NCBI GenBank assembly: GCA_020137815.1
Contig: CM035352.1
Span: 8,308,001-8,372,000 of the forward strand
Length of the DNA: 64,000 bases
Source of the DNA: Hormiphora californensis
Lineage: Eukaryota; Animalia; Ctenophora
Direction of reading: 5' to 3'
Made by a program: the position numbers and the translations under genes
Notes under the pieces: model-generated
Seen by the model: the letters and a program-made list of their open reading frames with translations, nothing else
What the model was told of the DNA's origin: nothing
The model's database searches: none
Shown here: positions 58,901 through 63,487 of the stretch, one piece after another
Position numbering within the stretch: the first letter of the stretch is position 1
Layout: each line of letters opens with the position of its first letter

Positions 58901-61900
58901 TTTGATGGGGTCTACACAAACATTCCTACCAGGGTAAGTAGTATTTGTTGGGGTCTACACAAACATTCCTACCAGGGTAAGTAGTATTTGTTGGGGTCTA
59001 CACAAACATTCCTACCAGGGTAAGTAGTATTTGTTGGGGTCTACACAAACATTCCTACCAGGGTAAGTAGTATTTGTTGGGGTCTACACAAACATTCCTA
59101 CCAGGGTAAGTAGTATTTGTTGGGGTCTACACAAACATTCCTACCAGGGTAAGTAAATTACTTACTAAGTAATGTTAGTTGAATGTTGGGGTTTACCTAC
59201 TTACTCAAAAAAGTACTGCAATATAATAATAATAAACAATCATTGATTATACGTTTGGCAGGTCTCCTAATTAGATCGGGGATCGGTAATATCAGGATCA
59301 AGTTGTCACAGTCATCTTACCCCGCCCCTAGGTGGTATATGTGGTATGGTTGCTGCTCTATGTCCTGGACGAGTTAATCCAAATTAAAATGACGCCCTTC
59401 CAAGATTGGGTGAACAACATTTTCAACAGGGTCGACATGTTCATGTACCTAACCGTTATTACTGGCATTATCCTCTGTCACATTCCCACAGAAGCTGGTA
59501 AGTTCACTTCAATAACTTTGCGGCAAATAAGTTCACTTCAATAAATTTCCGGCTAATAAATCAATATTTTACCAATCTTCACAATATGGGTATTATCTTC
59601 TGTTCACCCCTCCAGGTTCTGATACAGCAGATGCAAGTTTGCGTATAACATACGATACGGGGAGGATTTTCCTCTCCCTTGGCTCCATTTGCTTTTTCCT
59701 CCGGTTTCTCCACTCCTTTACAATTGACTCCACCCTGGGCCCTACCATCATGATGATCAGAATGATGTTATACGACTTCAAAGTAGGTGCTCGATCATGC
59801 CTCTTCACTATATTGTCACATGACCATACCACGTGACCATGACATCACGTGACCATTATATCACGTGACCATTATATCACGTGACCATTACATCACGTGG
59901 CGTCACGTATTTTACTCCCTCAGGTGTTTCTATTGATGTTGGTTATTGTGGCTGTAGCGTTTGGTGTTGGATATACCATTGCTCTAACGGACCCAGATCA
60001 GTGGAAAGACAACCAATCCCAGCTGGCTGGAGGGATCTTCTACTACACATACTTTCAGGTGATCTTCCTTTCAGAGCATTGGTCTGACCTGTATTCGCGA
60101 GCACCGCAGTCAGAGCATTGGCCTTACAGTGTTCCTCAGCTAAGTTGTAGAAATTACAGCTGAGTGTATTTAAAGAGTCCCTGTCCTGTCGCAGCACCAT
60201 ATTTGTAGTCGTACATTTTTTAATCGGTTTAGCATTTTCGCTATTCATAAACCACCAGTCCCAGCTTATAGTTGATGTGTGTGTGTTTTACTTTTTAGTA
60301 GAACCCGGCCATTATGATAACATTTGATCATGGTCATATTTGATCCTACCACGATATATCGTGATATTCACAAGGATCAAATACTGCTGCTGCTGTACTC
60401 CTACCTCACGCATTTCTCTCAGATGTTTGGAGAGCTATTTGTGGAGGATTTGAGGGAGGGAGCCGAGTCGGCAGATGATGATCAGAAACATTTCATAGAA
60501 ACGAAACAAAACGGTCGCCATGGTTACACAATCGGTTAGTAAAGATCACATCTCTGTATTTTTCCTTGATTCACGACTCTCTGGGAGCTATTAAATATTT
60601 TAAGTCTTGGCTTTCCTGATTTGTACCCCTCACTCAGACTGAGTGACACCCCCCTATCTCCCCTCTATCGTTATTTGTTGTGGGCGTGTACAGCAGCTCT
60701 ACTATCAAACACCCCATCTCCATTTGGTATCGAAGATACCTCACACTCTTCTCGCGCTGGCAAGGGAGGGGTAACTTCGTTACCAAATCTCCAGACTCCA
60801 GCTCCTTCCTCTCGTCTCTCTCCGGGTTTGAACAAAACACTTCGACAGCTCTACATTAAAACACCCCCCCCCCCTGCAGGTATAGTTGGGGTGTACATGG
60901 CAATAGTTGTGCTCATGTTGGTTAACATCTTGATCGCCATGTTCTCCGACACATATACCCGGGTAAAGGATAGAGAGGACATCATCTTCAAATTCCAACG
61001 ACTCGAACTGCTCCTGGTAAGAATTATTTCAAAATCAACCAGACTCCTGGTAAGATGTAGTGTACCTTTCTGAGAGATACTGTTAAGAGTGCTGAGTGAA
61101 TTATTTCAAAATCAAATGTTAGCATACAAATCAACGTTCTACGTTGCACTTGCAACTTGCAGCAACATATGCTATGAGAGGGGCATAAAATCAAATTTGT
61201 TGGACGTTGGTGTTATCTCTTTTTTTTTCTCCTCTCCCCCGGTTCATGTCTCACTCTCTCCCATGTATGTCCGTTTCATTTTCTGTTTTCACTATTGCTA
61301 TACCTCCTTTTGGGTTTCCTAGTAGATGCCAGATGGTAGAGAGAAAGAAAGAAATAGAGAGAGAGAAGGCCATTGTTTCCTCCTTATTACTACACATGTA
61401 CATTACCAACGGTCTGCTGAGCAGACTCTGCTCACATATTTATACCTTGTTAGTTGGACGGTAGAAACAACTCTTGTTTTCTCCCTGTGTGTTAGTGAAA
61501 CTCAGGCTACCCAATACTTCATATTGTACTCACGTTTGCTATTGAGTAGGTGCATGTAGTGTACATCAACCCTCCGTTACTGTTTTTCTTGTGTATTACT
61601 ATTAGCAGCCCACTCTCTTCCTGCTTTGTTCACCCTCCCCACTCCCCCGTGTTATCGCAGCTCCCCTATGTTTCCAGTCTGAACATGTCGTCTCCCCCAT
61701 TTCCAGGAATCCGAGAGAAACTATCTGGCCCCTCCCTTTAATTTGGCACACCTCCTGGCACGTGCCATCTGTGGGCGGAGCGAGAGGGACATGTTCTCTC
61801 ACGACAAGTGGAAGGATACAGTAATTCGATCAGCAGTACTTGATTCGCTTGAGGTAGAATTTTTAGTTTTTTAAACTTTTAAACGTAAAATACAATTTTG

Positions 61901-63487
61901 ACATCATACATATCAGTATAAATTCCATCCATTTTATATGTTGTACGGGGTGTTGGTCTTCTACGTATTTTACGGGGTGTTGGCCTCCTACGTCCCCTCA
62001 TGTGATTCGAGTTTCCCCACTCTCTCACTCTCTCTCTAGTTTCACCACTCGCGTCTTTCCTTGTTGTTATTTCGATAAGAAGTCGTCCTTCCCTTTTGTA
62101 AACTGATATTCTTCACCCTTTCTGTACCTTCGTCCTTCGTTATCTGGCAAACTCAATCAGGATATTGGGCCTTTCTTGTGATAGTCGACAAGCCTATGGG
62201 CGCTCGGAGTAGTAGTAGCTGTAGTGTTCACAGTGGGTAATTTTCCTGTGTGACCCTACAAAATGAAATATATGCCGTAGAAATCATATTTTTGGGCCAA
62301 AGTGACCTCTCCTAGACTAAAACCGTGCCTAGAAAGCGATTTAGACACTTTTCAGAGTGCTTAGATGCCACCTTTTTGAGATATTTGAAGAAAATTAGTT
62401 AGCTAATTAATAACTTGATTAAGTAAAAACGTAACTTGGCTCAGGAACCACTTAGAGATCCAATTTTTGATGCAAATTGTCCGGAATGTGCATGTTTATA
62501 TAGGACTTATGAAGCAACATATGGCCTAAATCAAACCGTTTTTGAGTTATATGCCACTTTAGATCAGGCATTTTACACATAAAAGCCGAAAAAGCGAAAA
62601 ATCGCTTAAATTTCGCACTTTAAATGGCTATAAAATTCAAACGGGGGAAAAGTGGGGAATTCCCGCGACACCACAATGTTCCAAATTGTCCAGAGAGTCA
62701 GAATATCACAATGAAAAGCTTGGCGTCGAGTGGCGAAGTAACTTTTTTTGGTCATTCATACCCTAAAAATAGCCTAAATTTGACACGCGCGACTGAGAAA
62801 AAACAGTTAGAGAAAGACATATTGAACCCTAGTCACTGAAAAGAACACAAAACAACCATCACGATACAAAAGAAATGAAAGAAAAAGAATGAAAGGTATT
62901 GCAGTAGTGTGCACATGGATCTAAGCGAATTTCACACCCAAAATGAAAACCCACAATTTCCCCCAACTTCAAACTAACATAAAATCTGTAAATCTCAATA
63001 TTTTTCGATGCGGTTTGTTTTACGTGAAACCTTGATTATTTTTACTATCGATATCCAAATTTCAGCAAATTTAAAGACAACTTTTTTCCCCACTTTGTAG
63101 GGTCGTTACCCACTGTGGTGTTGGGCCATTTGTCTGTTTCCTTGAGAACGTGGATTGTGTTGGTTCTATTTCCTGGAAGATATGGCTGATTTTATTTGTC
63201 CTTTGGGCTTTGGGCCAAAGTTTGGCTCCTTAGATGGTAGCTGATAACACTCTCTTCCCAGTTTGGCGTTGTAGTACCTACTGACACTTTTGCAGGATCT
63301 AGTCCGCGAGGAAAAGACAGCGAAGAGTGTTGAAACTGAAAACTTGGTTCGAGAGAGTACCCGTGTTCTAAAGAGCAAGGTTAACAAGCTACAGAAGTAT
63401 GTGGAACATTTAACCAGCACTATCGAGTCATATACATCCACTCTCCCCCCACGGACCCCCACTCAGCAGGTTTGTGATTGTGTCTAA
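48291..63487 (+). CDS. TRPM: TRPM-family cation channel, more than 25 small exons; exact ends uncertain
   Basis: DAFGKIKF..KYIRL, GLIKAAMTTNGWIITSGINAG, CIGFSSWG, LNPHHTHFL-like segment, ALGWNRPD, FIAHPACQ, WLLLYVLDE, LRFLHSFTIDSTLGPTIMMI, QMFGEL, LVNILIAMFSDTY..FKFQR (TRP box), C-terminal coiled coil. Confidence 0.9.
48417..49396. mobile_element. TA-flanked MITE with long TIRs in TRPM intron 1
   Basis: TA|ccgcgtgggccaataaaaagg ... cctttttattggcccacgcgg|TA. Confidence 0.85.
51404..51610 (+). repeat. 4 x ~58-bp duplication of TRPM exon end plus splice donor
   Basis: cacactgcccactaccctcgcatYaag|gtt repeated. Confidence 0.9.
55375..56358 (-). CDS. intact single-exon rhodopsin-like GPCR nested antisense in a TRPM intron
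   Basis: 327 aa, 7 hydrophobic segments, LACSDLL, ATVRFIQIRWPF; lies between TRPM exons ending ~54614 and starting ~57850. Confidence 0.85.
   Translation of the reverse strand: MAVFSEGKTSFPDFGVFQILVCLALVSAPLNAMVIRHNYYKKYSISQVLYIILACSDLLSSVVLSPVALSALWAEKDPNCGMVKNFLTFNISDVLCEDYYILYSKRINPSIFGLSVSLMVYTLQYAPIMITAIFATVRFIQIRWPFAHLPLKYILLGTVFSILYPPLYIAYLVTKGWPYTLKPVIFGIDFPYIGGPFYFIYLLASIGVVNLLGITSTCLTLSYLIWLYRHPIGGQKRSLNGTIKISILNFNSTVSMGIFIYTIVAKPFAYKTQDMKSTVELDTLVTPFIGSYLAHNLWPTTASLINGLLYLAFTKNARTLRRKEMRY
56423..57059. mobile_element. foldback MITE, TA TSD (Tc1/mariner-like ends)
   Basis: TA|cagggtgttcattt ... aaatgaacacccag|TA; the whole element is palindromic. Confidence 0.85.
57177..57250. repeat. 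28-bp tandem repeat, ~2.6 copies
   Basis: tcagagcattggcctgaccggactgcgg; related motif at 60071-60127. Confidence 0.85.
57960..59155 (+). repeat. 43-bp tandem array, 28 copies, each containing the TRPM exon end and 5' splice site
   Basis: ggggtctacacaaacattcctaccagg|gtaagtagtatttgtt. Confidence 0.97.
62229..63117. mobile_element. non-autonomous Transib/RAG-like transposon in a TRPM intron
   Basis: GTGTT 5-bp TSD (62224-62228, 63118-63122); CACAGTG...CACTGTG termini. Confidence 0.88.

Follow-up and report, generated by a model that had tools for sequence, protein, structure and literature searches.

In RAG evolution, the origin of the 12/23 rule that V(D)J recombination obeys has yet to be settled, and a small transposable element of the ctenophore Hormiphora californensis bears on it. 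The element, 889 bp long, lies at positions 62229-63117 of a 64,000-nucleotide stretch of contig CM035352.1 (C3:8308001-8372000, hereafter the window); it has CACAGTG at both termini and is flanked by a perfect duplication of GTGTT. Its two ends differ in length by about one turn of the helix, and the question is whether this inequality is incidental or reflects the way in which the ends are brought together. Our answer is that the element is probably a young, non-autonomous, MITE-like (miniature inverted-repeat transposable element) ctenophore Transib, moved by a RAG1-related transposase supplied in trans, whose bipartite ends would most likely be assembled as one long and one short end. A sequence-only reading of the window had described a Transib-like element with ends resembling the recombination signal sequences (RSS) of V(D)J recombination, and the target-site duplication (TSD) GTGTT, the CACAGTG termini, the spacers of 22 and 12 nt, and the nonamer-like ACAAAATGA and ACAAAGTGG are all found where it had placed them. 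We set the orientation of the element so that the end with the long spacer, of the 5′ terminal inverted repeat (TIR) type, is on the left; its features are then the following.

62224-62228, no strand: left copy of the target-site duplication GTGTT, read from the sequence
62229-63117, plus strand: whole non-autonomous Transib-type element, family 1a, 889 bp
62229-62240, plus strand: left terminal block CACAGTGGGTAA, 12 nt, made up of the heptamer CACAGTG (62229-62235) and GGTAA
62241-62251, plus strand: left spacer TTTTCCTGTGT of 11 nt, long end; counted the RSS way, 62236-62257, 22 nt
62252-62265, plus strand: left inner block GACCCTACAAAATG, holding the "nonamer" ACAAAATGA at 62258-62266
63091-63104, minus strand: right inner block GACCCTACAAAGTG (reverse complement), holding the "nonamer" ACAAAGTGG at 63090-63098
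63105, minus strand: right spacer of one nucleotide, C on the element strand, short end; counted the RSS way, 63099-63110, 12 nt
63106-63117, minus strand: right terminal block CACAGTGGGTAA (reverse complement), with the heptamer CACAGTG at 63111-63117
63118-63122, no strand: right copy of the target-site duplication GTGTT, read from the sequence

An independent inverted-repeat search of the window recovered both pairs of blocks: the terminal 12-mers (62229-62240 and 63106-63117) are 100% complementary and the inner 14-mers (62252-62265 and 63091-63104) are complementary at 13 of 14 positions (93%). The conserved end units of family 1a exceed a heptamer plus a nonamer, as the terminal unit is the 12-mer CACAGTGGGTAA and the inner unit the 14-mer GACCCTACAAA(A/G)TG, the two being separated by 11 nt at the left end and by a single C at the right end. 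The "22/12" of the family is the identical 10-bp offset, counted from the heptamer in the RSS way. We found no transposase inside the 889 bp, in agreement with the sequence-only reading; the longest internal open reading frame (ORF) has 71 aa, the element shows no similarity to the transposase loci described below, and it is therefore non-autonomous. Searches of the element for tRNAs and for Rfam families returned no match.

To what extent is this layout a property of the family rather than of one copy? The genome that we searched (110.7 Mb in 45 contigs) holds nine full-length copies and one truncated copy of family 1a. The recurrence of the design is far beyond chance: the nine are flanked by nine different perfect 5-bp TSDs (ATCCA, TGCAG, ATCAC, GATCC, CAGTG, GACGT, GTTAG, GAGAG, and, for the window copy, GTGTT), and all intact copies keep both the 22/12 layout and CACAGTG at the two ends. 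The asymmetry, including the offset of about one turn, is fixed across the copies, a point that the sequence-only reading had proposed to check, and no symmetric majority from which a single copy had departed was seen. Eight aligned full-length copies are 97.4-100% identical (mean 98.4%). The left terminal block CACAGTGGGTAA is invariant in 10/10 left ends, the left inner block in all copies, and the right inner block in 9/9 right ends. Of the variable end positions in the aligned copies, each spacer holds one, and the others lie past the inner block on the right. At the left end the only variable position is a T/C in the spacer (alignment column 21), and at the short end the single nucleotide is T, not C, in one copy (L008). 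Not one of the 52 columns within blocks is variable, whereas 6.6% of all columns are, a weak signal in the expected direction. Transib elements prefer GC-rich targets; here, the GC content of the TSDs is 51%, compared with 42% for the window, a difference that is not significant with nine duplications. By itself, the shared layout of the nine copies proves little because they are near-identical.

Family 1a is young and recently mobile. Both junctions of the window copy are bridged by contigs of three samples from two studies, and none of the contigs from these samples skips the element at the window locus. Several sample contigs join element ends to flanks outside the ten reference copies. In sample S3, the flank next to one right end maps to C8:6779195, a site without a copy in the reference, while another non-reference flank has no match anywhere in the reference. 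The insertion at C8:6779195 being empty in the reference, at least one insertion is polymorphic, and the family has therefore moved recently. An S3 contig also joins 62394 to 63023 (62395-63022 missing) and represents an internally deleted derivative of about 260 bp that kept both ends. Older left-end relics, at C10:1008961 (22 nt), at C6:1009816 (29 nt), and in a decayed copy on C13, retain a long spacer. No right end was found within 9 kb downstream of the diverged left ends at C10:1008961 and C6:1009816, and the ORFs at these two loci are unrelated or of low complexity.

Further evidence comes from relatives of family 1a. We took a census of every genomic end starting with CACAGTGGGTAA, read the next 23 nt of each, and used the reversed sequence as a control; there were 53 matches, against 18 for the control, and three subfamilies could be told apart.

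Subfamily 1a: inner block GACCCTACAAA; long-end spacer TTTTCCTG(T/C)GT
Subfamily 1b: inner block GATGCTATATTAGGG; long-end spacer GAAACGGGGGG, 12 nt in one copy
Subfamily 1c: inner block GATGGTCGT(A/T)TAGGG; long-end spacer TTATGCCGCTT or ATATGCCGCTT

The spacer of the long end measures 11 nt in all three subfamilies, the one 12-nt copy apart, and the spacer sequences are unrelated; at the short end, a single C (the T of L008 apart) precedes the inner block in all three. When ends were paired by coordinates and strand, we obtained 9 + 3 + 6 = 18 pairs, and 18/18 consist of one long and one short end. Since the spacers have diverged in sequence and kept their length, which is the classic signature of RSS spacers, the comparison argues for selection on geometry. 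The same comparison limits the resemblance to the RSS nonamer. Taking an A-rich ACAAAAACC-like sequence as the reference, nonamer-likeness of the inner block is specific to 1a, and its sisters, alike in geometry, carry GATGCTATATTAGGG or GATGGTCGTTTAGGG instead. The ACAAA box on which the sequence-only reading had relied stands in every copy of family 1a, where ACAAA(A/G)TG is invariant, but does not hold across 1b and 1c, which have TATATTAGG or TCGTTTAGG at that place. Therefore, what the lineage conserves is the geometry and not the nonamer-like sequence.

Other CACAGTG elements in the genome are built in a comparable way. Family 2 is represented by a 1.4-kb element at L073:1881-3321 (C3:571380-572820; TSD TATTG) and has about 15 end pairs genome-wide. 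Its ends read CACAGTGGYCTTTT, then 11 or 0 nt, then GGTGGTCAYTAAG, an offset of 11 bp, and 4/4 readable pairs are long plus short; but for the outermost 38 bp, which are asymmetric, the element is a near-perfect palindrome. Family 3 (1.16 kb, L015:769-1931, C10:1191305-1192467; TSD CTGAG) has a second copy at C2:8824072-8828783 and ends in which 2 or 12 nt separate CACAGTGGGAA from GAGGTGGACAAATTTTTT, a 10-bp offset or 13/23 in the RSS style, with ACAAATTTT as the nonamer-like box. Inside the C2 copy there is an additional stretch of about 3.5 kb, whose ORFs include proline-rich ones; it is probably a nested insertion and not a transposase. Genome-wide, an 11-mer census for family 3 brought up the two copies already known and otherwise no more matches than chance would give. 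Offsets of 10-11 bp, about one helical turn, thus occur in four (sub)families besides 1a, and over the five of them (1a, 1b, 1c, 2, and 3) all readable pairs, 24/24, are long plus short and none is symmetric.

Some further loci were noticed along the way. A family 2 copy at C10:4757019-4759505 encloses a transposase fragment, and a 74-bp "element" at C2:5391749-5391822 seemingly consists of little beyond one long and one short end. An additional apparent family has the ends CACAGTGGGAA(G/A)AAT(A/G)GTCCTTCAAGA and is found at C8:3680057, C10:6495574, C10:6578255, C11:462591, C12:5628386, C12:5648108, and C1:9583703.

The end design as such is not new, and its novelty was overrated in the sequence-only reading. 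Asymmetric, 12/23-like TIRs were described for Transib by Kapitonov and Jurka (2005; PMC1131882), who considered that the 12/23 rule could be derived from them, and the hypothesis of Yakovenko et al. (2021; PMC8355894) rests on their idea. Tao et al. (2022; PMC9435367) reported Transib-like proteins in ctenophores, and ctenophore elements with the exact terminal 12-mer and spacing of family 1a, and found asymmetric TIRs in all Subgroup I Transibs; Martin et al. (2023; PMC10462144) took such TIRs as ancestral. Current models, which draw on a handful of elements, take TIR asymmetry to be the ancestral state of both Transib and the RAG-like (RAGL) elements (PMC9435367, PMC10462144).

The closest published match is PbaTransib_0868, an autonomous element of Pleurobrachia bachei with the TSD CTGTC. 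Its 5′ TIR consists of CACAGTGGGTAA, GATTAGGGGGG, and GATGCTATATTAGGG (PMC9435367, supplement) and its 3′ TIR of CACAGTGGGTAA, a C, and GATGCTATATTAGGG; for PbaTransib_8175, of which the 5′ TIR is not printed, the 3′ TIR consists of CACAGTGGGTAA, a C, and GATGGTCGTTTAGG (PMC9435367, Supplementary Data 2, Figs 11-12). On the printed strings, which we read by eye and not through a tool alignment, and in which the gap runs of the extracted figure text are imperfect, the end design of PbaTransib_0868 is that of family 1a: the terminal 12-mer CACAGTGGGTAA, the 11/1 spacing, the single C, and the 5-bp TSDs are the same. On this analogy, family 1a would have its 5′-type TIR at the long end. Together with the 5-bp TSDs and the CACAGTG termini, this match to an autonomous ctenophore Transib bears out the Transib-like identity that had been proposed for the element. 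Family 1a differs from PbaTransib_0868 in its inner block, GACCCTACAAA[A/G]TG (about 8/15 positions shared by eye), in its spacer sequence, in having no transposase, and in the genus, whereas the inner blocks of the two Pleurobrachia elements, GATGCTATATTAGGG and GATGGTCGTTTAGG, recur unchanged in the sister subfamilies 1b and 1c. MleTransib_2823 of Mnemiopsis leidyi (5′, CACAGTGGGGAT, 15 nt, and ATGACATTAAG; 3′, CACAGTGGGGAT, 4 nt, and ATGACATTAAG; PMC9435367, Supplementary Fig. 8) shares the bipartite design with an 11-bp offset, exactly 23/12 in the RSS way of counting, but its terminal and inner blocks are others and are closer to those of family 2 (GGTGGTCATTAAG).

More distant systems show the same principle. 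Transib5 of Drosophila and Transib2_AG and TransibN1-3_AG of Anopheles have the order heptamer, spacer, nonamer, an asymmetry of the 12/23 type, and 5-bp TSDs (PMC1131882, Fig. 4C); unlike the ctenophore lineage, where the 5′ TIR is the long one, these insect elements of unrelated sequence have the RSS12-like end as their 5′ TIR. The V(D)J RSS of jawed vertebrates shares with family 1a the exact CACAGTG, spacers that at 12 and 22 nt are within 12±1 and 23±1, an ACAAAA-type start of the inner element, and spacers conserved in length and variable in sequence. In contrast, the RSS is not mobile, is cut by RAG1 and RAG2, and obeys a proven pairing rule, and in the ctenophore lineage it is the nonamer-like sequence that varies among subfamilies and the 5 nt after the heptamer that are conserved, in a TR2-like manner. 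Among the TIRs of RAGL elements we compared ProtoRAG (27/31), PflRAGL-A (heptamer, TR2, asymmetric spacer, and nonamer), and AanRAGL (4/13) (PMC8289069, PMC10462144, PMC9435367). They resemble family 1a in their CAC heptamer ends, 5-bp TSDs, conserved stretch after the heptamer, and unequal end lengths, but RAGL elements carry RAG2L beside RAG1L.

Which protein could move these elements? A genome search with the Pfam RAG1 family (PF12940) gave one weak match, a 209-aa C-terminal fragment at L058:4515-5141 (plus strand; C6:4524014-4524640) that carries the EGGLEACNKLLRRYRTRLSRK motif and a CCGHC-type tail and is, by eye, nearly identical to the printed C-terminus of MleTransib_3931 (Tao et al., 2022). 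All the relatives of this fragment are broken (C10:4758568, C4:6134573, C4:6552568, C4:6470440, and C4:6493827), and one of them is the piece enclosed by the family 2 copy at C10:4757019-4759505. Using it as a query, we found two intact Transib-like ORFs.

C3:8638196-8641021 (L071:3694-6522), minus strand: intact, intronless, single-copy Transib/RAG1-like ORF of 942 aa, 267 kb from the window
C3:3559723-3561753 (L072:3721-5754), minus strand: intact, intronless, single-copy Transib/RAG1-like ORF of 677 aa

PF12940 missed both and is therefore not a sensitive probe here. The two ORFs are 41% identical to each other and match HzTransib of Helicoverpa zea (PDB 6pqn), which has been characterised biochemically and structurally, with E values of 1e-11 and 5e-10 and an identity of only about 25%; according to the literature, HzTransib produces 5-bp TSDs through a nick-hairpin mechanism. 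The 677-aa ORF also matches the RAG1 core, and the 942-aa ORF has an N-terminal extension with weak zinc-finger/RING-like matches. Both keep the DDE-type motifs and lack GRPR/K and CCGHC. Within about 3 kb on each side of the two ORFs there are neither MITE-like ends nor a CAC...GTG pair with a matching 5-bp TSD. Beside them there is no RAG2-like gene, the ORF adjoining the 942-aa gene being of low complexity and not kelch, and a genome search for RAG2 (PF03089) had no match, which is weak evidence given that the control genomes were equally silent. The two proteins could be domesticated transposases or a trans-acting source for the MITEs. We also considered a locus of subfamily 1c on C7, with two tandem long ends (53177 and 53382, plus strand) and one short end (57784, minus strand) at distances of 4.4-4.6 kb; the pair of about 4.6 kb is the sole one large enough for an autonomous copy, and it was rejected as no transposase query matches it.

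We envisage the following mechanism, which is modelled on the RAG and Transib literature. The insertions, which are of the cut-and-paste type with 5-bp duplications of the target, would be made by a RAG1-related DDE transposase supplied in trans. The terminal block, CACAGTG plus GGTAA, would serve as the site of cleavage and heptamer recognition, and the inner block, GACCCTACAAA[A/G]TG, would presumably be bound by a second DNA-binding module of the transposase. The offset of one turn may set the two ends apart from each other within the synaptic complex. Since the blocks lie 11 nt apart at one end and 1 nt apart at the other, a difference of about one helical turn, a transposase dimer would most likely assemble on one long and one short end. 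We infer that such a pair is preferred or required by the transposase. The stronger proposal, that a ctenophore Transib transposase enforces long-plus-short pairing with helical phasing and does so without a RAG2-like partner, is one that we put forward tentatively.

Several observations weigh against this picture. Symmetric TIRs are found in many Transib families, and both kinds occur within Subgroup II (PMC9435367). RAG1 without RAG2 reportedly shows no 12/23 preference (PMC8355894). The ends of family 2 share yet another block, GAAAAATTTTTT, just 3 bp out of register, which makes the analogue of the nonamer ambiguous there. The 24 long-plus-short pairs reduce to about five independent observations because the copies within a subfamily descend from one master. 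Moreover, the autonomous partner with the same TIRs that the sequence-only reading had proposed to look for did not turn up in our RAG1 and Transib searches, and no transposase gene flanked by family 1a ends is present in the assembly. From the databases we took P0044 to represent the PbaTransib type; a stretch of 18 residues in it (SPHTHRPLFIAMGKEEVM) is identical in the PbaTransib_0868 protein as printed. The identity of P0044 to the 942-aa and 677-aa ORFs is only 25-28%, and a genome search with it found only C33:4321-5178 (plus strand; 44% identity, six in-frame stops) and a 66-aa piece on C4. The pseudogene on C33, a small unplaced contig, is the sole sizeable remnant of the lineage with matching ends, and the cognate PbaTransib-type transposase lineage appears to be dead in this assembly. 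The recent activity of family 1a might be due to cross-mobilisation by the intact ORFs or to an active copy that is absent from the assembly, or the loss may have been very recent.

The alternative that survives best, and one that we take seriously while doubting it, is that the asymmetry is inherited or tolerated and not required. Only the terminal block might be needed, or the inner block might be bound flexibly, and no rule of the 12/23 type would exist; the layout would be kept by descent, or the 5′ end would hold promoter or regulatory sequence of the parent element. The symmetric TIRs of other Transibs, the behaviour reported for RAG1 alone, and the small number of independent observations all speak for this view, as does the fact that a RAG2-like gene was not detected in the genome, with the caveat attached above to that search. 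Nevertheless, three subfamilies with fully diverged spacers and partly diverged inner blocks have kept 11 versus 1 nt, and tolerated asymmetry is disfavoured because neutral drift should alter the length of the spacer too. The offset of 10-11 bp is also found in the unrelated families 2 and 3 and in the Mnemiopsis element, and family 2 is asymmetric precisely in the outermost 38 bp of a near-palindrome.

It is very improbable that the element belongs to a RAG-like family (RAG1L plus RAG2L) and not to Transib proper. RAGL elements share heptamer-like ends with CAC termini, 5-bp TSDs, and sometimes asymmetric TIRs (PMC10462144), but the ends of family 1a match those of PbaTransib_0868 and PbaTransib_8175, which Tao et al. 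classed as Transib without RAG2L (PMC9435367), and nothing RAG2-like was seen beside the intact ORFs or, in the PF03089 search with its silent control, in the genome. Finally, we give next to no credence to the 10-bp difference being a private neutral indel of the family 1a master copy, even though plain inheritance could explain a layout shared by nine copies that are 97-100% identical and one old relative (C6:1009816) has a 29-nt spacer, given that the 11/1 spacing recurs in two sister subfamilies and two published Pleurobrachia elements, that offsets of 10-11 bp recur in two unrelated families and the Mnemiopsis element, and that the 29-nt spacer belongs to a lone, decayed end, no partner of which was found over 9 kb.

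Two aspects of the element stand apart from its ends. One is an internal stretch that it shares with other elements:

62399-62550, no strand: internal module of about 150 bp, about 80% identical, common to family 1a and family 3

A core of about 80 bp of this module (window 62471-62550) is also present in an unrelated MITE whose ends begin with a run of G, and unrelated MITE families therefore share a module. The unrelated MITE (about 831 bp, L028:859-1689, with copies in L017-L019, L029, L030, and about 25 further loci) has inverted ends made of the G-run plus CCGGCTGAAGTTTTTGAAG and duplications of about 7-8 bp. The other aspect is the surroundings. About 1.2 kb upstream of the element, an open frame at window 60621-61073 (plus strand) has a TRP-channel-like pore/TRP-box motif (…LIAMFSDTYTRVKDREDIIFKFQR…), and the element lies in non-coding DNA, downstream of the TRP-channel-like gene or in its intron.

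As the design, including the exact terminal 12-mer and spacing, has been published for a sister genus, the overall picture is unchanged by our results. What they add is evidence from within one genome that strengthens the case for a selected geometry, together with concrete substrates for biochemistry, in the form of a natural data set, from an animal whose lineage branched off very early, with five (sub)families, 24 long-plus-short pairs, and signs of recent mobility. The differing inner blocks of 1a, 1b, and 1c also suggest that the specificity for the inner block may co-evolve with the transposase. If the pairing rule is true, these three subfamilies, which agree in terminal block and spacing but not in the inner block, would be a ready-made test set, and Transib transposases at the base of the animals would already have had the essence of the 12/23 rule, which would then be ancestral and not an innovation of RAG1/RAG2.

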